This document shows positions 3,748 to 22,241 of a stretch of DNA of 22,241 bases, piece after piece. The stretch covers positions 1-22,241 of the forward strand of contig NIVC01005194.1 of the NCBI GenBank assembly GCA_002269645.1. The letters are read 5' to 3'. The stretch's first letter is position 1; each line of letters starts with the position of its first letter. The translations under genes were made by a program, and so were the position numbers. The notes beneath the pieces are model-generated. The model had not been told where the DNA came from. It worked only from the letters and a program-made list of their open reading frames with translations, and did not search any database. This stretch comes from Macrostomum lignano (taxonomy: Eukaryota).

Positions 3748-4114
3748 TTTTTTTATTAGAGGCAGGGAGGTTGTCTGCACCCTGGGGCACTTTGAGCGGC
3801 ATTGTCACACAACTGGCGAGATGCATTACTGCCCATTCCGCTGACTCCCCTGAGCAGGCACAGAGGCAAACAAGTGCGCAGATACGTACGCAGGCACACA
3901 CTCACACAAGAGTGTACAGCGGCCCTAACTTTATTTTATTATTAGGCATGTACACTTCACTGCACCTTGGAAGTTGGCTTTCAAGGCCATTAATTGCATG
4001 AGCAGAGCCAAGCCAAGATTCCAATTCAGCCCCAAATTAATGTGACTGCACTTGGAATCGAGCCTAGGTCGCTGGCACACCAGAGCCTGCGCTAAACCAC
4101 TCGGCTACGACCCC
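3748..4114 (-). mobile_element. tRNA-derived SINE, copy A (about 365 bp)
   Basis: The minus strand starts GGGGTCGTAGCCGAGTGGTTTAGCGC (A box) and contains GGCTCGATTCC (B box), ending in an A-rich tail. A 9-bp target-site duplication TCACTTGTT lies at 3738-3746 and 4117-4125. Colinear with the copy at 8939-9298. Confidence 0.9.
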
Positions 4115-4394
4115 TTTCACTTGTTACTGAATTGGCTATTATCAAAATGACTGTTACTGAATTGGTTATGCTTTGTTACCAAAGTAGACTAACTATAATT
4201 TAGATGGTAAATAGTCTAGAATCCTAAACCTAAAAAAGGCCAAAATTCAAAAATGCCTAATACTAATAATAGGCTTTTGACTTAGTTTCATTATTAATAA
4301 TAGATATTTTAATGATAGGCTCTTGGTTTTTTGGGAAGATTAAGTTAAAAGATTTTATTGTTAGTTAGAGTCAAATGATATAATAATTAATAAT

Positions 4395-5112
4395 GGAAAC
4401 CCTTATTTAGCCAGCACTGGCCGAATAAGTTTGCTACTATTTAGCCAGCAGTCCTGTCCCACTGCCAGTCAAAAAGGCTTGTTACTATTTAGCCGGCAGT
4501 CCTGCTCCACTGCCGGTCAAATAAGCTTGTCACTATTAAGCCGGCAATCCTGGCCCCCAATGGCCATGCCATTATATATATTTATTCGAGATATTCAAAC
4601 TTTGGGTAATACAAAGTAGGTACAACGAATATAAATCAATGCAGATTCAGTACAATTTATTACTTGCCTTCAAGTTTGTTTAACTGTTTTTGGAAGTCTT
4701 GCATATTCCGGAAATTATTTGAAGCATTAGAAGACACATAAACGAAAAAAAGTTAATTATGCATGTTTTACTTTCACTTTAATCTCTGAATCAAAACCAC
4801 TCATTAAAGCCAAAAACCACTGCAAACACCTTTAACTAAGAACTCTAAAATTGTAGTATAAATAATTAGCTTGTAGTATGTTAAATTATTAACTTAAGGT
4901 CATGACGAGCAGTGCGCAGTTATAAAATGTATAAATGTATTTTGACCAGCATGTCCATTGGGGGCCAGGATTGCCGGCTAAATAGTGACAAGCTTATTTG
5001 ACCAGCAGTAGTGGGGCAAGACTGGCGGCTAAATAGTGACGCGATTATTTGACTGGTGCTGGCTAAATAGTAGCGAACTTATTCGACCGGTGTCGGCTAA
5101 ATAGGCACTGCC
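4395..5112. mobile_element. Non-autonomous foldback/MITE DNA transposon with about 170-bp terminal inverted repeats
   Basis: 4395-4568 and 4950-5112 are imperfect inverted repeats built from 48-bp subrepeats (ACTATTTAGCCRGCAGTCCTG...). Termini read AT|GG...CC|AT around a non-coding AT-rich core. Confidence 0.85.
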
Positions 5113-5521
5113 ATTATGCATTAATAATATTTAAAAAACTTTTTATAAAAATACATACACTAAGTATATTTTTATAAAACTATAAGTTTAAAATATTAGA
5201 ATATTTCAAATTTGAAAACTATTATTTATAATTAATTATAATTCTTATTTAAAGTAGATAAGATACTTATCATTTTCAAATAATCTAGGTTGTATATTGT
5301 ACTTAGTGATATCAAGCCTATCTATATCTATATACTTAGAATTTACAGGATTTAGCTTTTGCAATGGTCGGCTTATATGGCAAATTGGTTAATTTAGATA
5401 GACCAATGCTATAATAATATAATATAGGTTTAGCTAGATAAAAGGGTTCTTAAGTTAAGAAATAAATCAATTTAATATGAATGCTACAATTGATAGGGTA
5501 ATATTTTAAAATAATACTTAC

Positions 5522-5718: not shown

Positions 5719-6263
5719 CCTTATTCCTCACGCTTAGGCCTAGTCTAAAGCAATCGAAAATTCGCAATCGACACGACAGTTGGTTAGCAAAAACAGTGGT
5801 AAGGTTGAATTATGGATTAACAATAACAAGTCGTGTCTGTGGTATCGAACGCTTGAAAACTCAGATTTCTATGTCTAAAAAGACAAAAAAATTGAAAAAA
5901 ATTCACACTCTTTACACAATAAGACAATGTAATTTTAAGTTTAAAGATAACTTCTTAATCACACACGGAAAGATCCAGCGACAGCGTGTGTAACTGGTCC
6001 GGCAAATGTTTTCTGAGAAACGTGAGACCACTTAAATTTGTGCGAAAATGCTTCGTAGTAATAACTTTACTAGTTTCGAACCACTCCTAAAAACAATCAA
6101 ACAGAACATTCTCTGCTTTTGTCAGTCAGTTTTTACCCAGATCCAAGGCTCCAAGACATATAGGTGTTGAAATGTTGATTTTTTAATTAAGTTGCAAAGA
6201 TTCATCTTTTGATCGTTTGCAGATACTGACAACAATAACAACATGCAGCAACAACAACAAAAA

Positions 6264-6640
6264 TTAACAGTCAGAGTCAGGACTCCGAGGTGTGCCTAAT
6301 GGACGCACTGGAGCGACCCGGCGGGGCGTCACCACGGGGGCGTTGCGCGCTAGGCGGAAGAGGTCGGAGTTGACGTCAAGATTGAAGCAGGTGTCCTCCC
6401 AGTGCAGCCGCTTCGCCCAGGGCGATGGTGCTGCGGAGGTGGGTGCGCGTCTGTTGAAGAGCGGCAACGTTCTGCTCCGTGGCGTCGAGTTCGGCACAGC
6501 TGCGAGCAGATTGACAAGCCCTCTGGGCGGCGTCGCAGTCGCTGTTCCAGAAGGACTTGAAGGCGCCGCGGCGACAGCCCCGCGAGATAGCGTGGGACGC
6601 GGGCGCGCAGGATGTCTGCCACAGTAGTCTGGCCCACACA
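6264..6640 (-). mobile_element. Inverted 5' segment of the non-LTR retrotransposon (endonuclease-RT linker)
   Basis: Minus-strand frames give FWNSDCDAAQRAC...LQQTRTHLRSTI and AKRLHWEDTCFNLDVNSDLFRLARN. These are the PWWxxxC and AKxxxWxxxCxxL linker motifs that normally precede RT domain 0 in APE-type LINEs. Confidence 0.7.
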
Positions 6641-8372
6641 CGCATCGCCTCCACTAATCAGGAAAAGGCCGAGCTTTGCGCCACCATCTGCGCCTCCGAG
6701 TCCAAACTCGAGCCCGGCCCAACGACCGTATAAACACGCGCAGCGAAGCCTGCAACGCTTTCCTAGAGCTTGCCGCGCCACTGAAAGCCGCCTCGACATC
6801 GAAAAGGACTTCTCACAGGCCGAACTCAAAAACGCTATGAAACGTCTCAATTCAGGCAAGTGCGCGAGCCCCGACGGGATCTGTATAAACGAGATGCTAA
6901 AACAGCTCCATGCTACCGCCGAGGGTCGCCTTCTGGACCTGATTAAGAAGTCTGCAAAGGCCAGCCAGTGCCTTCCGGATGGACAACCATCGTCCCGATC
7001 CCAAAGAAAGGAAATGAACCCGGCAAGCCGACGTCCTACAGGCCAATCGCGCTCACCAGCTGCAATTGCCAAGCTCACCGAGTGCCTCGTCCAACAACGC
7101 CTGTCCTACTGGCTGGAATCCAACGGCGTCCTTACGCCCAACCAGGCTCGACCAGGACCTCGGTATTCCCGCACGCTTTGTGTTCTGGATCCATCGCTTC
7201 TTGAGCCACCGCCGCACGAGGGTCAAATGGGTCAACGGGCCAGTCGCGAGCGGGTCTTTGAGGACGGCCTCCCCCAGGGTAGCGTCCTAGACCCCTTCTC
7301 TGGCTCATTTTCGCGAACGACCTCCCGGCCGCCATCAGGACCGCTATCCCGGACTGCGGCATCAACTTGTTCGCCGATGACAGTAGCTTCCTCGCCACCC
7401 ACCGCTGCCTCACCGACTGCACCGGCATCATCCAACCAGCCCTCGATGCCACGGCGGCTTGGTGCGCCCGATGGAAGGTTCGAATTCTTCTTAGTTACGA
7501 CAAATATGAGTACTCGACCTTCACCCTCTGTCCGTCTGAAACAAACGACTCAAGATTAGCGGCCATGACATCGCCTTCAACCAGAACCCCCGCCTGCTTG
7601 GCGTCACCCTTGATGGCCAACTCAACTTCCCAAGCACGGCTAGGAAGTTCGCCGGCGGATGACCCAGCGCCGCAGCGCCCTCAACGCCTTAGCTCACCGC
7701 AGTACCGGCGAGGACACGTACCAGAGTCCTGCACACAGCCTACATTGCTACCATCCGGGTCTGTGCCGACATGGCAGTGCGGTCTGGGCTAACGGGGCCG
7801 CCCCAGGACTCGACACGGCATCGAAAGCCAGCAAGCGATCTGTGCGCGGCTGATCGCATCTTTAGTCATCTTTGGCTCTACTCCGTGGAAGCTATCTACC
7901 TGGAGGCGAATTTCCACCCAATCAGTCTCGAAGCCCGAAGATGGGCCCTGATGGCCTAAGAGAAAGCGTCCTGCCGCCTCATCGACCCGTTTCGGCAAAT
8001 CTGCGACAGGCACCTGAACATCCGTCTGGCGGCTAACAAAGGCCTTCTTCGCGAACAAGCCAGAGCCTGCTGCGATGCCATGATCGCTCCGCCTCGTCTG
8101 TTTTTCCTCTCATCCACCATCCTCCTTCGGATTCTCTTATCGATTGTGGAGTCCATCTGCATGTTTACAAAGCTCCCAGAGTTCGATGGCATCCGTGGCA
8201 GTGCTCTCCGCCATTGAGCTGCGCTGCCCCGACTCGGCCCTCTACTTCACCGATGGCTCCGTCTCCGGTGGTATCCCTAACGGTGGGTCGGTTTGGATCC
8301 TGCTGCATAAAGAAAACGGCTGGATTAGCTGCTGTGGCCACGCTGCCATCGGCCGATGGTGCAATTCTTTTT
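6640..8372 (+). mobile_element. Degenerate I-group (I/Nimb/Ingi-like) non-LTR retrotransposon ORF2 fragment: reverse transcriptase plus N-terminal RNase H
   Basis: Ordered motifs across shifting frames: TNQEKAELCA, FSQAELKNAMKRLNSGKCASPDGICINEMLK, TIVPIPKKG...SYRPIALTS, LTECLVQQRLSYWLESNGVLTPNQA, GLPQGSVL, INLFADD, WCARWKVRI, PRLLGVTLDGQLNF, HGSAVW, and RNase H YFTDGS...CNSF. There are many frameshifts, RT domain 3 is missing and no 3' tail is present. Confidence 0.92.
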
Positions 8373-8618
8373 CTCCACCGTCTCCTCCTCCATCAAACAG
8401 CGCCTGACCTCGATCGCCATCAGAGTTGTCCTTCCTTTTGTTTGCTTTGCCGTTCCATCTGGAGCCGCAGCCTCCTGGGTTGGCGCTGTTCTCGCGGGCG
8501 TTCGTGTCTTGATAGCCAGCCTATCCGTTGGCTCGATCCTCCGTGATCGCGGAGCTCTGCCGACCAGAGGTCGATTCGGTGGCGTCGGTCCCGTTCTCTC
8601 CGCCCTGTCCGGGGCGTC
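8372..8618 (-). pseudogene. Secreted PAN/Gly-rich protein gene, last visible exon (continuation of the ALK/LTK-type glycine-rich domain), truncated
   Basis: Acceptor CTAATCAACAG| at 8619/8618 is phase-compatible with the 9574 donor. It reads (G)RPGQGGENGTDATES...ANG*AGYQ...GGCGSRWNGK...GQALFDGGGDGG, with an in-frame TAG at 8521-8523, and abuts the LINE RNase H at about 8372. Confidence 0.55.
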
Positions 8619-8938
8619 CTGTTGATTAGTTTTTTTTTGGGGGGGGGGAGGGTTGCCACGTAGGAATGAAATAGATAGATAAATGAAAAAACCTCCATAT
8701 AAGGGCCTTGTAAAACCGAAAGCGCAAGACACCCCTGCTGACATCATGCAACCTTTCCAGCCTAATTTATATCAGCTTCCCCTCTTTTGAGTCTTGGCAT
8801 TTCAGCATTCTAGTACAGGGGGCATCGGGATCCCAGTAACGATCTTTAATATACAACAATCTGACGTTTCTAAACTCCTCGCGATGAAAGTAGGCACTTC
8901 TCGAAAAACGGTCTCTGCTTAATTGTTCATGATGATGA

Positions 8939-9298
8939 GGGGGGCCGTAGCCCAGCAGTAGCGCAGCTGCTCTGGTGTGCCAGCGACCCAGGCTCGATTC
9001 CAAGTGCAGTCACATTAATTTGGGGCTGAATTGGAATCTCGGCTTGGCTCTGCTCGTGCAATTAACGGCCTTGAGAGCCAACCCCCCAAGGCGCAGTGAA
9101 GTGTACATGCCTAACGATAATATAAAGTTAGGGCCGCTGTACACTCCTGTGTGAGTGTGTGCCTGCGTACGTATCCGCTCGCTTGTATGCCTGCTCAGGG
9201 GAGTCGGCGGAATGGGCAGTAATGCCTCTCGCCGGTTGTGTGCCTATGTCGCTTAAAGTGCGCCAGGGTGCACACAACCCCCCTGCCTCTAAAAAAAA
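8939..9298 (+). mobile_element. tRNA-derived SINE, copy B, in an intron of the Gly-rich gene
   Basis: GGGGCCGTAGCCCAGCAGTAGCGC head, GGCTCGATTCC B box and poly(A) end. A 12-bp target-site duplication AATTGTTCATGA lies at 8921-8932 and 9297-9308. Colinear with copy A. Confidence 0.92.
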
Positions 9299-9573: not shown

Positions 9574-9882
9574 CATCAAAGCTTCTAGAAGCTCCACCAC
9601 CGACGCCAGCAGCGTTTAACAGTTCTGAGCCAGAGTACACAAAACTGCCGCCGCTTCCGCCGCAGCCTCCATAAGAACGATTGGTTGTGCCGGCCGCCTG
9701 TCCAACACCGATTTTTAGAGTGTCTCCATTTTTCCAAGGCGAAATATATCCAGTAGACAAGGCTCCTCTGCCGCCGAGCTTGCCAGTATTGAGGTTGCTG
9801 CCGCCGCTGACCTCGATACTGTAGCAGCCAGTCATCGTGATGGTCAGCTGCTGCACTGAACCGCGTCTTCCCGTGCTGGCTT
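9574..9882 (-). pseudogene. Secreted PAN/Gly-rich protein gene, exon encoding an ALK/LTK-type glycine-rich domain (309 bp, phase 1-1, open)
   Basis: Runs from TTTTATTCAG| (9883/9882) to G|GTGAGA (9574/9573). Reads VQQLTITMTGCYSIEVSGG...GGRGALSTG...GDTLKIGVGQ...GGCGGSGGSFVY...LLNAAGVGGG, fitting the QxWTVPxTGxYxIEAxGA...GGxGA...LxIxVGQ...GGGGSFV...AGGGGG consensus of the ALK/LTK glycine-rich domain. Confidence 0.72.
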
Positions 9883-10163
9883 CTGAATAAAATTAAATCG
9901 TGCATAGAAGGCAATTGGGAATCTGCATGTACATGTTATAGTTGGCACTTTGCTGTGTGACGATAGCTATCAACAAGCCAAATAGGATTAACTATATCCA
10001 TACTGATACAAGCACACATACACCGGAAAAGTACGCAAACATAAAGTCTCTCAGAGGAGGGAGAAATATGACTTTCTCTGTACCAGTCTTGTTCGACACC
10101 GTGTCTTCGACTCTCTTGGACCCATACGCTATCGCTTCGATCAAAGAGATCTATAGCACTCAC

Positions 10164-10550
10164 TTCGAAATACGGATGGTGGCTTGAACCGACGCAAAAA
10201 GACCTGGATGTGGAAGTCCTCTCGCCGCCAGGCGCGCAGGCTGGAGTCGTTCAGATCGCGGCTCCCAGCTGCCTGTCGACGCGAGTCTCCTGAGGCCGCT
10301 GGCACAGCGCATTGTCGTGCACTACCAGCTGCTGGCAGAATCTAGTCGATGGTATGAAGACAGCCACCAGGCAGTCACGTGACCGGCAGATAGCGAGGCA
10401 CTCAGAGTCGGAGCACAGGCCGGTGGAGTTGAAAATCTCGCTGCTCGAGGAGGCGTTGAGTTGGACTGGGGCCTCCGTGAGATCGATGGCGGCGCAGCAT
10501 GTCTTACGTCTGAATTTCTGTCTTTAAGGACTTCGCACACTGAGACTAAC
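10164..10550 (-). pseudogene. Secreted PAN/Gly-rich protein gene, exon with a PAN/apple-like cysteine motif; frameshifted
   Basis: GC-rich segment reading CCAAIDLTEAPVQL...CSDSECLAICRSRDCLVAVFIPSTRFCQQL (CxxxCxxxxCxxxxFxxxxxxC). A second frame then ends AWRREDFHIQVFLRRFKPPSVFR at donor A|GTGAGT (10164/10163), phase 1 and compatible with the next exon. The 5' boundary is uncertain. Confidence 0.5.
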
Positions 10551-11357
10551 CTGAGAAATTCGAGATTCGAGGGGTGTCCGGTAAGTTCTGATACTTAATC
10601 CCCGAGCAAAAACAGTAGCAGCTGCAAGCACAACAACTCTTCGTTCCAATGAATTTAGTCGCGTGTATTTTGGTCATTTCACTCAAAATTTGTGTGACAA
10701 ACAATCTCAATGCCACTAATACATGTAGTCTTATAGTAAAAGTTAAAAAATTAAAAAGCGATGTTTTGTTCTCAAAGAAGCTCTCTTTCGATTGCACACT
10801 CACGATGGTGTCAATAATTACAAAAATCCAAACACTTCAGTAAGTAAAATTTCGTAAGTGTACTCAGCAACATCGAAAAGTCGCCATCACTGAAGATTGA
10901 CCGTCTGTGGTTGCCACTGTTGAGAGTGCAGGTGAAGTCAATCTTTGCGAGTGACGCAACTCAGCTACGCCACGTGGCAGACTTGAGTTGAGGAATGAAG
11001 TGGGGGGAGCGGTGTGCGAGGCTTGGATTTAAAGTGCCGGGATTTTCCGGACGTCTAAAATGTTTAGTGTAGATCGTCTAAAATGTCATTTATCGTTGGT
11101 TACAGGATTCACACTTGTCAGAAACTTACTAGTAAGCGAATCTCGTAAACGTATAGATCGAGGAAGGTAGAGTGGCCGCCAACTACTCGTACAAATGAAA
11201 CTCAATAAGCGGGAACTCCAAAAAAGATCTGTGATATAGATTAATAGATCATTGATAGACCATTTTATTACATGAAACAGACAGAAAGTTTGGCCTAAAT
11301 TATCACAAAATGTGCAAAAACCATCGCAACAAAAGCAAAAAATTAAGTTATATTCAC

Positions 11358-11418
11358 CCTGAGCCGCAGACGCCATCACGACTATCCAAGCTTGAAGCGA
11401 CAGTAGAGTCAGTCTCAT
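11358..11418 (-). CDS. Signal-peptide exon, probably exon 1 of the PAN/Gly-rich gene
   Basis: MRLTLLSLQAWIVVMASAAQ(G) is hydrophobic with an AxA-type cleavage region and ends at donor G|GTGAAT (phase 1). An acceptor-like TTGCATAG lies 24 nt upstream of the ATG. Confidence 0.55.
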
Positions 11419-11667
11419 AATCGGTGTCAGTTTTATCAGTAGCTATGCAATTACAAATTCGACTAATTTTAATGCGAAGCCAGTGAAACTAAAGAATTGA
11501 AAAGCTTGTCTCTCAAATACGGCTACGGAATGCAAACCTGATAGTGTTTCACCTGATAGTAATTCAAAAGAATGAACATCGCGTTTTTTTTCTAAACGAC
11601 AGAGAAAGTCTACGTATTCAGGAAAGAAACTACATCTGCATGTGGTATCTCGTATCAAGTAGCAGCA

Positions 11668-13302
11668 TCAAGTAGCCGTCGCCTTAACTTCCTCTGACAG
11701 ATCGTCATTGTTTTGTAGATTAGTCACCCGAATTTTCGGTCCGAAAGCGACATCGTGCACCAGTTCCAGCAGCTCGCACAGGGTCAGCAGGGACATGCCC
11801 AGATACACGCCCATTATGCCGCCAACGTCCGAGATAAAGTCGGAAAAGTTGTAATCTTTGGAGAATGTCACCCTGTCGCACAATACGCGCTCCGGCTTAA
11901 AGTGCACTTTCAACAGATTGCTGCTAACGTAGGAGGCAAAGTCGCTTGTTGAATAGTTGTTCAAGAGGTAGTCGAGAGCCGGGACGCTCTGATTTTTTGC
12001 TTGAGCCTTCAACTGAGCCAGCTTCACCGAAGTTTGAAGAAACGATTCAGCCGAGCTTTGTGTAGGCCAATCGGCACTGGAGATGCTGACGCTGTAGTCC
12101 ATCAGGCTACATGGACGCTTTGTCTTGCAGAGCTTTTGTGCCTCCACCTCAATCCTATTAATCCGCTGTGCTATCGAAGCATTTGAGCCAACTCTGATCA
12201 GGTCAGCAATTGACACAACTGAAAAGTTATAAGCGAATGCCTTTCCTCTCAACGGCCATGGCAGAGGTGACTGCAAACCAGACGAGTTTATTATCGACTG
12301 GTACTGCCTATGGTACTCATAGTAGTAACAATACGAATAGCTGTACGAATAATTGCTGGGCGTTTGATCGTACAAATTCACAAACTGAACATCCGCAGCT
12401 TCGCTCAGACAGTCGTCAAACTGGCCTTCTTTGTACACGTGCTGCGTCATCCCAATTAAAACGGTGTGATGCTTGGCTGCATCCAGAGAGAATGACTTCA
12501 CAAAGTCGGAGGGAATTTCTCCCGGCTGGGTGAGGAACACTCGAGCACCAGACCGCCTGTCCGTGCTGATCAAACTGAGTTCCGACAAGAGCCAGTCAGA
12601 CAGGGGAATTGGGACACCAAAGATGAACACACCAGAGTCGATTCTGACTGATGGGAAACCCGTGTCAACAAACAGACTGAGGATCAGTCCTGAGTTGGAG
12701 CCACCTCGTGAGATTTTTTTCTGCAACTCACTGCTCAGTTTCCACTTTTGGCAGCGAAGAAAGTTTGGGTCGTAGTAGGCTTGTGGCTGCAGGACTTCAT
12801 ATCCAGGTAAACCAGAATCCTGTTTGTAGATGGCGTAGCTTTCAATGACTGTTTGCTCGGTTCTGTGACCAAGCTTGTCTACCAGGAAAGTATACGGAGC
12901 AGACTGCGGCAGCAGCCCTGAAAGATTCCTGATAAAGCTTCTTGCTGTGAGATCGTCCATTCCCATAGCCATGCAATCTGCATAAAGATGATAGAGTCCT
13001 GATAAAAGCGCTGAGCGGACCGTTGCATTATCAAGCTGGCTGGAGTAACTTGACGATATTGGGTTCTCGAGGCAGACGTAGATATCGGGAAATTGAAACT
13101 CTACCTGGTTAGCCTCCAGGGTCGATGTGACTTGCTGAGACTGCAGTTTGATAATAAAGTCGGAGAATCCTTTTAGAAAGAGGCCCAGCATAGCGAGGTA
13201 AAGCAGTAGCCAACCGACGCGTACATAAATCGGCTTTCCAGAGACGGTTCTGGGAAGTCCGTGAGCCGTTGTCGATTTCAACGCTGCTTTCAGTGGATTC
13301 AT
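11668..13302 (-). CDS. DEG/ENaC (amiloride-sensitive sodium channel superfamily) subunit 1, intact, intronless CDS (about 544 aa from MNPLK)
   Basis: Pre-TM1 TTAHGLPR (HG motif), TM1 VRVGWLLLYLAMLGLFL, FPDIYVC, GLILSLFVD, GARVFLTQPGEIP, and TM2 FISDVGGIMGVYLGMSLLTLCE (deg site Ser, GxS filter GMS). GCCATG at 13302 aligns with the paralog start; the ORF is open from 13365. Confidence 0.93.
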   Translation of the reverse strand: MNPLKAALKSTTAHGLPRTVSGKPIYVRVGWLLLYLAMLGLFLKGFSDFIIKLQSQQVTSTLEANQVEFQFPDIYVCLENPISSSYSSQLDNATVRSALLSGLYHLYADCMAMGMDDLTARSFIRNLSGLLPQSAPYTFLVDKLGHRTEQTVIESYAIYKQDSGLPGYEVLQPQAYYDPNFLRCQKWKLSSELQKKISRGGSNSGLILSLFVDTGFPSVRIDSGVFIFGVPIPLSDWLLSELSLISTDRRSGARVFLTQPGEIPSDFVKSFSLDAAKHHTVLIGMTQHVYKEGQFDDCLSEAADVQFVNLYDQTPSNYSYSYSYCYYYEYHRQYQSIINSSGLQSPLPWPLRGKAFAYNFSVVSIADLIRVGSNASIAQRINRIEVEAQKLCKTKRPCSLMDYSVSISSADWPTQSSAESFLQTSVKLAQLKAQAKNQSVPALDYLLNNYSTSDFASYVSSNLLKVHFKPERVLCDRVTFSKDYNFSDFISDVGGIMGVYLGMSLLTLCELLELVHDVAFGPKIRVTNLQNNDDLSEEVKATAT

Positions 13303-13666
13303 GGCGAGCCTGCAGGTACTGCTGCTCCAAGTAAGTGAAAAAACGTTGGCAAGTTTCTGCCTCATGCAGTTGAGAATGATTGGGTTTTTCTAGTCATCTA
13401 TAGGCTCTACCGCATTGGTTACTTTGCGGACAGACTAACACAAGTAAAGGCAGGTATGTCCATGAAAAATCGATCGTCTAACTAAATAGAGAGCACCTGT
13501 GTACACATCGCTTTCTGCCGCACTTTTCAGCGCCTAAACAGTAATCTTGTAACAATTGCTTTAAAACTTGATAATAAATTCAGCGAAAAACAACTTTGTC
13601 ATACATGCAGTCGGTGGCCAATAATTCAAACAAAACTGATATTCATTCCAGATTTTGAAAGGAAAA

Positions 13667-13672
13667 TTTATT
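13667..13672 (-). terminator. Candidate polyadenylation signal (AATAAA) of DEG/ENaC subunit 2
   Basis: TTTATT on the + strand, about 195 nt downstream of the stop codon at 13866, in an AT-rich 3' UTR. Confidence 0.4.
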
Positions 13673-13865
13673 TCATAACAGTTTAACTTTTCTCATTGTA
13701 TATTAAACTAATACAAAACTAATTTAACAAATGGTTTCGCAGAGAAGTTTCAAAAACTCGAACAAAAGGGCCGCAAACAACCTAGCCGAAGGATGAAAAT
13801 AGAATAAAAATTGTCATTTTAGAAAGTCAACATAAGTAGAAATTATAAAGCTGTTTTAAATATGC

Positions 13866-15451
13866 TCATAAGGATGATTCCGTTGATTTTTTGTCTTCTG
13901 CTAAAGCGTCAACTTTCACTGATTGATCAGCTTTTCTTTTGAGCAGAAAATTCGCTGATATCTCGTAGATCAGTTCGAGAACTTCACACAGCGTCCACAG
14001 CGACATTCCCAGGTAAATTCCCATAATGCCACCAACATCGGATGTGAAATTCGATGCTCCGTAGTCTCTAGAGAACGTGATCTTGTCGCACTGAACTTTA
14101 CTCGGTAGAAAGTGCACTTTAAGCAAGTTTCTGTTCGAGTAACTGACGACCCTGTCGGCGCTGCCGCTAAGCAGAAAGTCCAGCGCCGGCACACTGAGAT
14201 TCTGGGCTTTGGCCCTGCTCCAAGACTGGAAGATGAAGCTTCTGATAAACGGATCGAGCGAGCTGAGCGAAGGCCAGTCAGTGCTGGAGATCCGAACGCT
14301 GTAGTCCTGGTCGCTGCATAGCCGTTTTGATTGACACGCCTTCACGGCATTCACACGAGTCTGGTTGATCGCAGCATCGCAATATTCTCCAAGCGAACCA
14401 TTCATGGCCAATACTGAGAAAAAGTTTGGCAAACCAGTTAGGTTGGTCACATATTTGTAGCCTCTTAATGGCCACGGCATTGGGCTAATCTCTCCGGACA
14501 GTTGCAAGCAAGTCTGACACTGCTTGTGATACTGGTAGTAGAAGCAGTACGAGTAGCTGTAACTGTACTCATAGGGAGTCCGATCGTAAGGGTTCAAGAA
14601 CTGAACTGGGGGCTCATTCTCCAAGCACTCGAACTGGCCAGATTTGTACTGATATTTGGTCATGCCGATCTCCACGGTGTGGTGCTTCCCGGGACTGAGC
14701 GTGAACGACGTCGTGAAGTCGGACGGGTACTGACCCGGAGGTGCGAGGAACACGCGGACACCCGAGCTCCTGTCTGGACCCACCGGGTCGCCAAGAGTCC
14801 AGTCCGAGGTCGGGATCGGGGTGCTCTGATCGAACACCTTCTGTTGAATTCTGTTAGAGGCGCTATAAATATCGGAGAAGTTTTGATCGATAAGAATTCG
14901 AGCAATTATGCCTGACGTCTTTCCCGCCTGCAAAATTTTTGCTTGCATCGAACTGTTGAGGGCCCATTTCAGGCAGCGAAGCCACTTCGGATGATAGAAG
15001 CTTTCAGGTCGAAGGTCCCGATACAAAGCCGGTAAGGCAGGGACTGCGGATACATGAAGCTGAACTCTGCTTCAGTTTGCCGAGCTTCTTCACCTGTTAT
15101 ACCCAGCATTGCGATATAGTTCTGTATGGCTCCGCTTGTCGCATTCAATCCCGCATTGATTTCATCAGCTGTGGCCGCATCGACCCTCGCGGAGTAGCTT
15201 CCAGAGATTGGACTCTCGAAGCACATGTACACGTCCGGGAAGACGAAGCTCTCAACTCCCACTTCCTGTGTGCTGGTTGGCTCGTTCTGCTGCAGTTTAA
15301 CCACAAAATCGCTGAATCCTGTGAGGAAAAGCGCCAGCATTGTGAAAAAGATGAGCAACCAGACGATTCGGATGTAAATTGGCTTGGCTGACACTGTTCT
15401 CGGGAGCGCATGCGCCGAAGTGTTCTCTAAAGCTGACTTTAGTGACTGCAT
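13866..15451 (-). pseudogene. DEG/ENaC subunit 2, intronless tandem paralog, frameshifted at about 15030 by a deletion of about 85 nt
   Basis: The N-half (ORF 14969-15694, MQSLK at 15451) has TSAHALPR, TM1 and FPDVYMC. The C-half (ORF 13866-15026) has GVRVFLAPPGQYP and TM2 FTSDVGGIMGIYLGMSLWTLCE. About 28 codons present in subunit 1 (TFLVDKLG...KQDSG) are missing at the frame change. Confidence 0.88.
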
Positions 15452-16299
15452 TGTTGCCCAGCAGAGTTTTCCGGAAACGATTTCTTCCTTATCAGCAAAT
15501 TCTGGTCGTTTGTTACCGGTGGAGTTTCGCAGACATGCTGAGCCTGCTATATTCATAGCTTGCTTGTTAATAGGGTAGAGGTTCTCAACCGCACCTGTGT
15601 AAACACTAAAAAAGTTAGCCAGTGTATGCATATACTCTCCAAATACGCTCATTAATTTGGCCTTCACAAATTCTTTCTCATATAGATTTTCCATGGCAAC
15701 GCCTATAATGGCCCTCCAATGTCATTCATGGATGATTTTCAGCTTTGTATTCCAATGAAAAATGCTTCCGTTTGTTTTTTGTATAACTCATGTGTCCAGA
15801 GACCTATTGTGACCTGAGAACTTCAGACAATAAGTTTTGGGCAAATATAAATCTTCTCGATGAGGTCAACGGATCGCTAATTACTATGTGCGCATACTTG
15901 AGCCAAAAATTCAGGACAACTGCCGGATGCAACTTTGTAAAATGTAACGGGCTCAAAATTATGATTCTCGCAATTTGTCCTACACGTACGAGCTACATGT
16001 ACAGCGCTGAAGCGCTGAACTACATGTGTACAACTGAATCGTATGTACGATATTTCATTTTATTGATTTGCTTGAGCCACTTCCAATCTCCGTGTGGTGC
16101 TTCGATCCCAGGACCTGAGAGAGGAATCCGAGTCAGCGAAATAGGCTAAATTGGTCTCTGGGTTGTTGGTGCATCGGATCATTAAAAATAATTTAGTGGT
16201 TAAAAAGCATGATGACCTCATCAGTTTTGTCAAATATAATTTGTAATCATTTTCATGTACATGTACATTTGTAATATAAAAAATCAGCTTGCATTTAAA

Positions 16300-19706: not shown

Positions 19707-20144
19707 GCCAGCCTCCCAGATCCTCAGATGCTGGGCCAGCCTCCCAGATCCTCAGTTGCTGGGTCAGACTCTCAGATCCTCAGTTGCTGGGCCAGTCTCC
19801 CGGAATGTCAGTTGCTGGGCCAGTCTCCCAGAATGTCAGTTGCTGGGCCAGCCTCCTAGAGTGTCAGTTGCTAGGCCAGCCTCCCAGAGTGTCAGTTGCT
19901 GGGCCAGCCTCCCAGAGTGTCAGTTGCTGGGCCAGCCTCCCAGATCCCCAGTTGCTGGGCCAGCCTCTCAGATCCTCAGTTGCTGGGCCAGCCTCCTGGA
20001 ATGTCAGTTGCTGGGCCAGCCTCCCAGAGTTTCAGTTTCTGGGCCAGCCTCCCAGAGTGTCAGTTTCTGGGCCAGCCTCCCAGAGTGTCAGTTTCTGGGC
20101 CAGCCTCCCAGAGTGTCAGTTGCTGGGCCAGCCTCCCAGATCCT
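19707..20144. repeat. 28-bp intronic minisatellite (about 15-16 copies)
   Basis: Unit CAGTTGCTGGGCCAGCCTCCCAGAGTGT, with variants ending ...GATCCT or ...GAATGT. Confidence 0.95.
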
Positions 20145-20182
20145 AATCCGCAACCCCTCCCCCACCAAACCTGTCTCATCAG

Positions 20183-20429
20183 GTGCCAAGATGTGGTGGT
20201 GACAGCCAAAGGCCACGAGCTGGCAGACCTGATTGACAAGACCAGTTTCCGCCAGCCATTCCTTGTGCCGAGTCCCGAAGGTTTGGACTTAGTTGTGCCA
20301 CCAGGCAGCTTCACCATTCGAGATGTTGTGGATTCCGTTGGCAAGGACCGTCTCGTTGACGTGATTGACGTACAAGAGCAGCACGACTTCAAGATGAGCA
20401 TGGCCGATTTCTTTAATTGGTTCTATCAG
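20183..20429 (+). CDS. KDM7: KDM7/PHF8-family demethylase exon
   Basis: Runs from CTCATCAG|G to CAG|GTGTGT. Reads CQDVVVTAKG...SFRQPFLVPSPEGLDLVVPPGSFTIRDVVDSVGKDRLVDVIDVQEQHDFKMSMADFFNWFYQ, matching the PHF8 pattern PILVxxxDGLGMxxP...FTVRDVExxVGxDxxIDVIDVxxQxDxKMKLxDF. Confidence 0.92.
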
Positions 20430-20589
20430 GTGTGTTCGCAGAGAGTTGCTATTCGATCTTATTATCATGTAGATATTAATTACCGTTCTAAAACTAATAA
20501 ATATGAATTTCATGTAGTTCGATTAAGTCACTCCTAAAACCACTGAAAATTACCTATTCTAAAGAGTCGGTCATAATTCTCTTTTTCAG

Positions 20590-21478
20590 AATCACCAACA
20601 AATTCTCATTCTAAGAATCGCTCACAAATCTTTATTCTAAGAATCGCCCACAAGATCCTCCATTCTAAGAATCGCCCACAAACCCCCATTCTAAGAATCG
20701 CCCACAAGATCCCCATTCTAAGAATCGCCCACAAGATCCTCCATTCTAAGAATCGCCCACAAACCCCCATTCTAAGAATCGCCCACAAACCCCCATTCTA
20801 AGAATAGCCGACAAACAAACCCCTAATCTAAGAATCGCCCACAAACCCCCCATTCTAAGAATCGCCCACAAGATCCTCCATTCTAAGAATCGCCCACAAA
20901 CCCCCATTCTAAAAATCGCTCACAAATATTTATTCTAAGAATCGCCCACAACCCCCTCCATTCTAAGAATCGTCCACAAATCCCCCATTCTAAGAATCGC
21001 CAACAAGATCCCCCATTCTAAGAATCGCCCACAAGATCCCCTCCCCCATTCTAAGAATCGCCCACAAATCCCCATTCTAAGAATCGCCGACGAACCCCCA
21101 TTCTAACAATGGACCACAAATCCCCCATTCTAAGAATTGCCCACAAACCCCCATTCTAAGAGTCACCTACAAATCCCTATTCTAAAAATCGCCGACAAAC
21201 CCCCATTCTAAGAATCGCCGAGAAACCCCCATTCTAAGAATCGCCCACAAACCCCCATTCTAAGAATCGCCCACAAACCCCCATTCTAAGAATCGCCCAC
21301 AAACCCCCATTCTAAGAATCGCTCACAAACCCCCATTCTAAGAATCGCTCACAAACCCCCAATCTAAGAATCGCCCACAAACCCCCATTCTAAGAATCGC
21401 CCACAAACCCCCATTCTAAGCATCCCCCACAAATCCCCCATTCTAAGAATCGCCAACAAATCCTTAAAAATCGGGCCC
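20590..21478. repeat. 26-28 bp intronic minisatellite (about 32 copies)
   Basis: Unit AAACCCCCATTCTAAGAATCGCCCAC, with length variation in the C-run. Confidence 0.96.
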
Positions 21479-21484
21479 ACACAG

Positions 21485-22017
21485 GAAGACCGAGGCAACA
21501 AGATCTACAACGTGCTAAGCCTGGAGATTTCTGAGACTCGCCTGTCAAGCACAGTTGTACCGCCTAAACCAGTGAGAGACCTGAGCCTGGTTAACCGCTG
21601 CTGGCCAGACGAAAGCGGTCACCTAAGCGGCGAAGATTGCCCAGAAGATGACACCCGCAATAAGCCCGAAGTGTTGAAATTCTGCTTGATGAGCGCCGGT
21701 CACTCCTACACAGATTTTCACATCGATTTCGGCGGCTCATCAGTCTGGTATCACATTCTCTGGGGCGAGAAAATCTTTTATTTAATACCGCTAGCGACGT
21801 GAATTTAGATCGATACGAATCCTGGATGGAGTCGCCGGATAATTTGACCGAATTCCTTGGCGATCGTTGCCCAGGTCAGGTGTATCAACTGAGAGTTACT
21901 ACCGGTAATACTATTGTTCTACCCTCTGGTTGGATACACGCCGTGTACACGCCTATGGATAGCCTGTGTGTTTGGCGGCAACTTCCTGCATTTGCACAGC
22001 GTTGAAATGCAGATTCG
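21485..22017 (+). CDS. KDM7: KDM7/PHF8-family demethylase JmjC catalytic exon; two 1-nt indels (about 21795 and about 21966)
   Basis: After CACACAG| it reads EDRGNKIYNVLSLEISETRL...KFCLMSAGHSYTDFHIDFGGSSVWYHILWGEKIFYLIP, then NLDRYESW...LPSGWIHAVYTPMDSL, then VFGGNFLHLHSVEMQI(R)|GTAAGC. The Fe(II) ligands HxD...H and the 2-oxoglutarate-binding Thr and Lys are all present. Confidence 0.93.
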
Positions 22018-22039
22018 GTAAGCTCTCGGTCTCTGAATA

Positions 22040-22241
22040 TCGCCCTAAGAAGTACAAATCGCCGATAATCTATAAAATCGTCACCAATCTATACAAATTG
22101 CCGATTATCTGTAAAAATCGCCCCTAACTAATCTATAAAAATCGCCCCTAGTCTATAAAATCGCCCCTATTCACTATAAACGTCGCCCCTAGTCTATAAA
22201 ATCGATCCCTAATCTATAAAAATCGCCCCTAGTCTATAAAA
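22040..22241. repeat. About 20-bp intronic minisatellite (about 10 copies, runs off the window end)
   Basis: Unit AAATCGCCCCTAGTCTATAA, more degenerate near the donor site. Confidence 0.9.

Follow-up and report, generated by a model that had tools for sequence, protein, structure and literature searches.

An old tandem pair of DEG/ENaC genes in Macrostomum lignano, an intact and a damaged copy, with a candidate gene for an orphan secreted protein downstream

In Caenorhabditis elegans, the DEG/ENaC subunits MEC-4 and MEC-10 of the touch channel depend on the extracellular proteins MEC-1, MEC-5, and MEC-9, and to our knowledge the genes for these MEC proteins are not arranged as an operon. The same species also has "SL1-type" operons, where polyadenylation of the first gene takes place directly next to the position at which the second gene is trans-spliced. 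Within the flatworm genus Macrostomum, there is a single 35-nucleotide (nt) spliced leader (SL) that ends in ATG, and in Macrostomum lignano approximately 30% of the genes are trans-spliced and approximately 15% have been assigned to operons (PMC8629364; PMC5730564). The motif [T/C]TNCAG is present at approximately 44% of M. lignano trans-splice sites, and the genes that receive the SL are mainly evolutionarily conserved ones, enriched among stem-cell (neoblast) genes, and not lineage-specific ones (PMC8629364). SL trans-splicing has been reported for M. cliftonense and M. hystrix as well (PMC10468722).

We analyzed a 22,241-nt stretch of M. lignano DNA (contig NIVC01005194.1, hereafter the window), for which an initial annotation had proposed an operon made up of two DEG/ENaC genes, ENaC2 and ENaC1, and a gene for a secreted protein. 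The gene order that it gave was confirmed: ENaC2, ENaC1, and then a signal-peptide-like exon were all found head to tail on the minus strand, with unchanged coordinates. The stop-to-ATG gaps are 500 nt between ENaC2 and ENaC1 and 249 nt between ENaC1 and the third gene, and no opposite-strand gene lies between them. From the evidence given below, we lean toward the view that these would be ordinary tandem paralogues, that is, an old tandem DEG/ENaC pair with one intact and one damaged member, together with a candidate orphan secreted-protein gene, and that the units would mainly be expressed separately.

ENaC1 (11668-13365, minus strand) is an intact, intronless DEG/ENaC gene. Its open reading frame (ORF) encodes 565 amino acids, or 544 when counted from the conserved ATG at 13302, and matches Pfam PF00858 (ASC) end to end (profile positions 2-455 of 455; E = 1.8e-37). 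The HG motif that precedes the first transmembrane segment (TM1) is present (TAHGLPR), as it is in all five of the M. lignano paralogues aligned, and the second transmembrane segment (TM2), LGMSLLTLCELLEL, carries a G-M-S motif. By analogy with TM2 of ASIC/ENaC channels, we take TM2 of ENaC1 and that of ENaC2 (LGMSLWTLCEVLEL) to contain the G/S-x-S selectivity motif. The closest relative of ENaC1 is the M. lignano protein A0A1I8GD92 (P0001), which is 51-53% identical over 92% of the length. An exhaustive HMMER search against 1.84 billion representatives gave M. lignano proteins as each of the six best matches to ENaC1. When the ENaC alignment was used for a profile search, P0001 was found again and nothing else. 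Exact look-ups in the protein collection gave no record for ENaC1, from either start, or for P0001. ENaC1 probably encodes a working channel subunit, and with ENaC1 and ENaC2 a DEG/ENaC clade that is specific to Macrostomum gains two members.

ENaC2 was found as two overlapping ORFs in different frames, both of which match ASC. The N-terminal frame (14969-15694, minus strand; profile positions 2-88, E = 3.5e-09) is open from an ATG at 15694 and includes TM1, and the start that is conserved with its relatives is the ATG at 15451 (MQSLKSALENTSAHALPR). The C-terminal frame (13866-15026, minus strand; profile positions 225-455, E = 5.9e-24), which was also recognized by alignment, covers the extracellular domain and TM2 and ends at a stop codon at 13868-13866. 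Three-frame translation and alignments to ENaC1 and the M. lignano paralogues placed a lesion at 15015-15040 on the minus strand, and the frame switches between ...PQSLPYR (frame A) and YRDLRPESFYHP (frame B), near 15035-15020. Approximately 30 residues that are present in ENaC1 and in P0001-P0005 are missing from ENaC2 at this lesion. In addition, the HG motif reads HA (SAHALPR), and this loss of the glycine was seen only in ENaC2 when it was aligned with ENaC1 and five M. lignano paralogues. The missing segment and the frame change are both explained by one deletion with a length that is not a multiple of three, and because a single event accounts for both defects, we lean toward a real, recent inactivation. 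ENaC2 is thus most likely a recently inactivated copy, and the decay that had been suggested for this locus is supported by the frame change, the loss of approximately 30 residues, and the change of HG to HA. A short intron at the lesion was considered and rejected: the lone GT...AG pair spans 24 nt, and its removal would excise conserved residues. Upstream of the conserved ENaC2 start, an 81-codon extension (15452-15694, minus strand) has a codon-usage score of 13.7; the two remaining frames score -21 and -38. No relative shows a counterpart of this extension, which may be either a real N-terminal extension or a product of chance.

The two genes share 50% amino acid identity, and their proportion of synonymous differences (pS) is 0.80, which is saturated, with a nonsynonymous proportion (pN) of 0.34. 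Nucleotide identity is approximately 65% and survives only in the coding parts. These values indicate that the duplication is old and that both copies were long under purifying selection. We propose that a Macrostomum-specific DEG/ENaC gene without introns would have been duplicated in tandem long ago, that the downstream copy, ENaC1, would have stayed intact, and that the upstream copy, ENaC2, would have lost a segment out of frame and its HG motif would have changed to HA. The first exon of the candidate orphan secreted-protein gene would lie directly downstream of ENaC1. Tandem duplication alone would leave a head-to-tail order and short spacers, and co-transcription would be unnecessary. 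Linkage was compared at four M. lignano paralogous loci, a set that leaves out the locus of the closest relative, P0001. One ENaC gene was found at each, and within 10 kb there was neither a tandem ENaC copy nor a gene related to the third one; tblastn searches with the third-gene ORFs returned nothing at E < 0.01 within 10 kb of these four ENaC paralogues. The same three-gene order, which had been suggested as a thing to look for at paralogous loci, was therefore not found there; the ENaC genes of these four loci are solitary.

Several observations weigh against this reading. In ENaC2, open stretches of 241 and 386 codons flank a lone lesion, and an assembly error is a possible source of its frame break, given that the window also contains a JmjC exon, described below, with two 1-nt frame breaks. 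Operons of M. lignano have intergenic distances that peak at approximately 100 bp, with a working threshold of 1 kb (PMC8629364). Seven nucleotides ahead of the conserved ENaC1 ATG at 13302 there is a T-rich tract followed by CTGCAG/ (13315-13310; the slash marks the junction), which fits [T/C]TNCAG and would fit trans-splicing. Finally, 25 nt lie between the ATTAAA of ENaC1 and the nearest AG, and 50 nt between it and the ATG that follows; over the latter distance a separate promoter and 5' untranslated region (UTR) would overlap the ENaC1 3' UTR.

The alternative that survives best is an operon resolved by the SL. One primary transcript, beginning upstream of ENaC2 (or of ENaC1), would be cleaved and polyadenylated after each cistron, and the SL would be added to the downstream cistron or cistrons. 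We consider this possible, at distinctly less than an even chance, and we are similarly tentative about the proposal that at least one downstream unit may be resolved from a polycistronic transcript. The premise of the initial annotation that SL trans-splicing might operate here was sound, in that every one of the six closest relatives of ENaC1 is an M. lignano protein and the genus has both SL trans-splicing and operons (PMC8629364; PMC10468722), with the proportions of trans-spliced genes and operon genes in M. lignano given above favoring the idea. Its argument from short same-strand spacing also held, with gaps of 500 and 249 nt that agree with the positional criteria for flatworm operons. 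Both gaps separate same-strand neighbors at a repeat-adjusted intergenic distance of less than 1 kb, the criterion of PMC8629364, and the locus fits the positional definition of a flatworm operon, as do thousands of catalogued M. lignano loci. The lack of an opposite-strand gene in either gap points the same way.

The sequence signals in the gaps were more divided. An AATAAA (13672-13667, minus strand), the sole canonical poly(A) hexamer of the 500-nt gap, lies 194 nt past the ENaC2 stop, and an ATTAAA (11473-11468, minus strand) lies 195 nt past the ENaC1 stop. Together, these two hexamers have 41 matches on the minus strand across the window, or approximately one per 540 nt, which is background, so one match per AT-rich gap is expected. 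The short distance from the ATTAAA to the next ATG nonetheless favors an operon, as does the absence of a GT[AG]AG donor from both gaps, which upholds the earlier statement that no convincing upstream donor is present. The acceptor-like sites that had been named there fared less well. The one upstream of ENaC1, TACACAG/GTGC (13493-13503, minus strand; ACACAG/G junction at 13497/13496), has a purine-rich upstream tract with a pyrimidine fraction of 0.32. The one at 11443, TTGCATAG (11443-11450, minus strand), 24 nt ahead of the ATG at 11418, is a TAG with a pyrimidine fraction of 0.47, and neither gap contains [T/C]TNCAG. In the interval from the ENaC1 poly(A) signal to the ATG at 11418 there are just two TAG sites and no acceptor motif, which argues against an operon. 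A better acceptor candidate for ENaC1 was found at 13310-13350 on the minus strand, where a CCAAC branch-like site and the T-rich tract precede the CTGCAG/ that ends at 13310; the position of this CTGCAG/ just ahead of the conserved ENaC1 start is a point in favor of an operon. The claim that no room is left for a promoter concerns the 249-nt gap alone and is conditional on the exon at 11418 being real. Among the two junctions, the one from ENaC1 to the third gene would be the stronger operon candidate. An 11-mer, TACACAGGTGC, that occurs upstream of both ENaC genes (13493-13503 and 15591-15601) was considered as a conserved acceptor or E-box and was dropped as chance-level because 12% of dinucleotide shuffles of the two upstream regions also had a word of 11 nt or more in common. 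Searches of the window gave no match to the 3' half of the M. lignano SL, no Rfam family, and no tRNA.

One further point in favor of an operon comes from another locus. The intronless M. lignano paralogue P0003 (contig NIVC01000110.1, L002 9950-10003) has a canonical TTTCAG/ 15 nt before its ATG, which raises the possibility that members of this DEG/ENaC family may be trans-spliced. No annotated gene lies in the 3.8 kb upstream, and the site looks like one at which a monocistronic transcript is trans-spliced or, alternatively, like the acceptor of an intron in the 5' UTR. Set against an operon at the present locus are its broken first cistron, ENaC2; the lineage-specific nature of its genes, compared to a trans-spliced set that is biased to conserved genes; the failure to see the linkage at the four M. 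lignano paralogous loci; and the status of the third gene, which is a candidate only. On this balance, we continue to favor ordinary tandem paralogues.

That third gene is best described from its putative exons. The ATG at 11418 opens a signal-peptide-like ORF, MRLTLLSLQAWIVVMASAAQ, which would form a first exon (11358-11418, minus strand) and ends directly past the predicted cleavage region at a GT donor, the phase-1 donor G/GTGAAT (11358/11357). A candidate Cys-rich exon (10164-10465, minus strand) has a phase-compatible acceptor, ccccag/, at 10466 and a donor, GAA/GTGAGT, at 10164/10163, and contains a Cys-rich ORF at approximately 10465-10255. A candidate Gly-rich exon (9574-9882, minus strand) contains a 102-codon ORF (9882-9574) between a strong acceptor, ttttattcag/, and a strong donor, G/GTGAGA, and is phase-compatible with the GTGAGT donor at 10163. 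Taken together, these features make a spliced orphan gene without a recognizable domain, running from 11418 onward, plausible. We think it rather unlikely, though by no means remote, that there is no third gene at 11418, in which case the signal-peptide-like ORF would be a chance ORF in or just past the ENaC1 3' UTR and the Cys-rich and Gly-rich ORFs would come from an unrelated or decayed gene. Such an absence would agree with the results of the searches: Pfam gave no family for any candidate exon or for the conceptual 224-amino-acid product, even at E values up to 10; the PDB gave no relative of the candidate exons; and no homologue was detected with any of the candidate exons, the Gly-rich one included. 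It would also agree with the codon-usage scores of the Cys-rich and Gly-rich ORFs, which are positive but modest, with the frame change or 53-nt intron that is required near 10324-10255 if the pieces are to be joined, and with the transposon-derived sequence that starts approximately 280 nt past the Gly-rich exon. Three features speak for a gene instead. Signal-peptide-like starts are scarce in the window, being found in 2 of the 260 ATG-initiated ORFs of at least 18 codons, a count that rests on a crude, post hoc rule; the GT donor closes the first ORF right past the predicted cleavage region; and the Gly-rich ORF is flanked by strong, phase-compatible splice sites. A resemblance of the Gly-rich ORF to the ALK/LTK glycine-rich domain was rejected after neither Pfam nor the PDB showed any similarity, even with E values as high as 10, and a resemblance of the Cys-rich ORF to a PAN/apple domain was unsupported by Pfam. 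A single-sequence AlphaFold2 model of the Gly-rich ORF had a predicted local distance difference test score (pLDDT) of 35 and was unusable.

The functional part of the initial annotation, a co-expressed module in which the two DEG/ENaC subunits would form a heteromer dependent on the secreted product of the third gene in the manner of MEC-4/MEC-10, is very improbable: adjacency and a signal-peptide-like start are all that speak for it, and against it stand the broken frame and lost HG glycine of ENaC2, a third gene without an EGF, Kunitz, collagen, or other Pfam domain and without a detectable homologue, and the lack of a third-gene relative near the four M. lignano ENaC paralogues. We would be just as surprised if this were an animal operon that supplies the parts of one channel complex, two DEG/ENaC subunits and a novel secreted accessory protein, by way of one transcript, with its adjacency kept since an ancient duplication by polycistronic/SL co-regulation. 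Were the three units nevertheless resolved by the SL from one transcript, the locus would be an unusual case of an animal operon with tissue specificity and a functional theme and would offer a route to studying channel accessory proteins in a transgenesis-capable flatworm.

The remainder of the window holds one further gene and several repeats. On the opposite strand, a PHF8/KDM7-like JmjC gene (20180-22020, plus strand) has an intron of approximately 1.06 kb at about 20433-21490, and its conserved exon can be read through only if the frame shifts twice by 1 nt, near 21795 and again near 21972, the two shifts compensating each other. When the three frames are joined in a conceptual translation, the product aligns end to end with the solved KDM7/PHF8 structures 3n9l and 3kv4 (E = 3e-44). 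The frame breaks may be either assembly indel errors or a sign of decaying gene copies in the region. A PHD-finger exon was looked for across the window and not found, and the idea that the ENaC pair is nested in an intron of the JmjC gene was dropped, there being no such exon to support nesting. Tandem arrays with periods of 28, 26, and 20/40 bp (at 19707-20140, 20588-21460, and 22056-22241) lie around and within the JmjC intron and create long spurious ORFs, for example at 19896-20537. Positions 1-1504 hold a satellite, a 32-bp unit present in 47 copies with 94% matches, which explains the strong GC skew at the left end.

Between the satellite and the channel genes, a GC-rich block (approximately 6000-8750, plus strand; 54-60% GC) contains frame-shifted ORFs in which reverse-transcriptase-like and RNase H-like motifs (YRPIALTS, FADD, and FTDGS) were recognized by eye. 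It looks like a degenerate non-long-terminal-repeat retrotransposon, and its ORF fragments gave no match in Pfam. Long inverted repeat arms at 3750-4119 and 8936-9298, which are 81-92% complementary, lie around approximately 4.8 kb that includes this block. Parts of the arms (3829-3962 and 9090-9219) are approximately 82% identical to M. lignano contig NIVC01002341.1 (L004 2808-2948), and the arms thus represent an interspersed noncoding repeat in two copies. Apart from these arms, the region at 4381-5126 is palindromic. A short interspersed, noncoding element of approximately 170-190 bp (10861-11035, no strand assigned) falls within the putative first intron of the third gene and is 84-88% identical to a part of M. 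lignano contig NIVC01004250.1 (L001 14849-15009). In each contig the element follows an ENaC paralogue, with its relative orientation unchanged between the two. Probably it is a repeat like a short interspersed nuclear element, and it had no match in Rfam.

Compared to the MEC-4/MEC-10 system of C. elegans, the one shared feature of the locus is a DEG/ENaC gene beside a candidate gene with a signal-peptide-like start; unlike MEC-1, MEC-5, and MEC-9, the third gene here is without EGF, Kunitz, or collagen domains. The locus resembles the C. elegans SL1-type operons in that the ENaC1 ATTAAA is 25 nt from the nearest AG and 50 nt from the following ATG; any trans-splicing at this point would abut 3' end formation. 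The two differ in phylum, and the putative acceptor here is a weak TAG. The SL operons of M. lignano and other flatworms (PMC8629364; PMC5730564; PMC12582326) have in common with this locus same-strand neighbors less than 1 kb apart, spacers without cis donors, and one SL ending in ATG, and the 249-nt gap also falls within the limit of 300 bp or less that is used for operons of parasitic flatworms (PMC12582326). Unlike those operons, the present locus has spacers without [T/C]TNCAG, lineage-specific genes, and a broken first cistron. Tandem DEG/ENaC paralogues of a lineage-specific PF00858 expansion form the remaining comparison. The M. lignano DEG/ENaC paralogues examined are solitary, whereas the pair described here is old yet adjacent, with one copy damaged. 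In common with such an expansion, which in M. lignano includes several related paralogues (P0001-P0006), the pair has the HG region, TM1, a Cys-containing extracellular domain, and the G-x-S of TM2.

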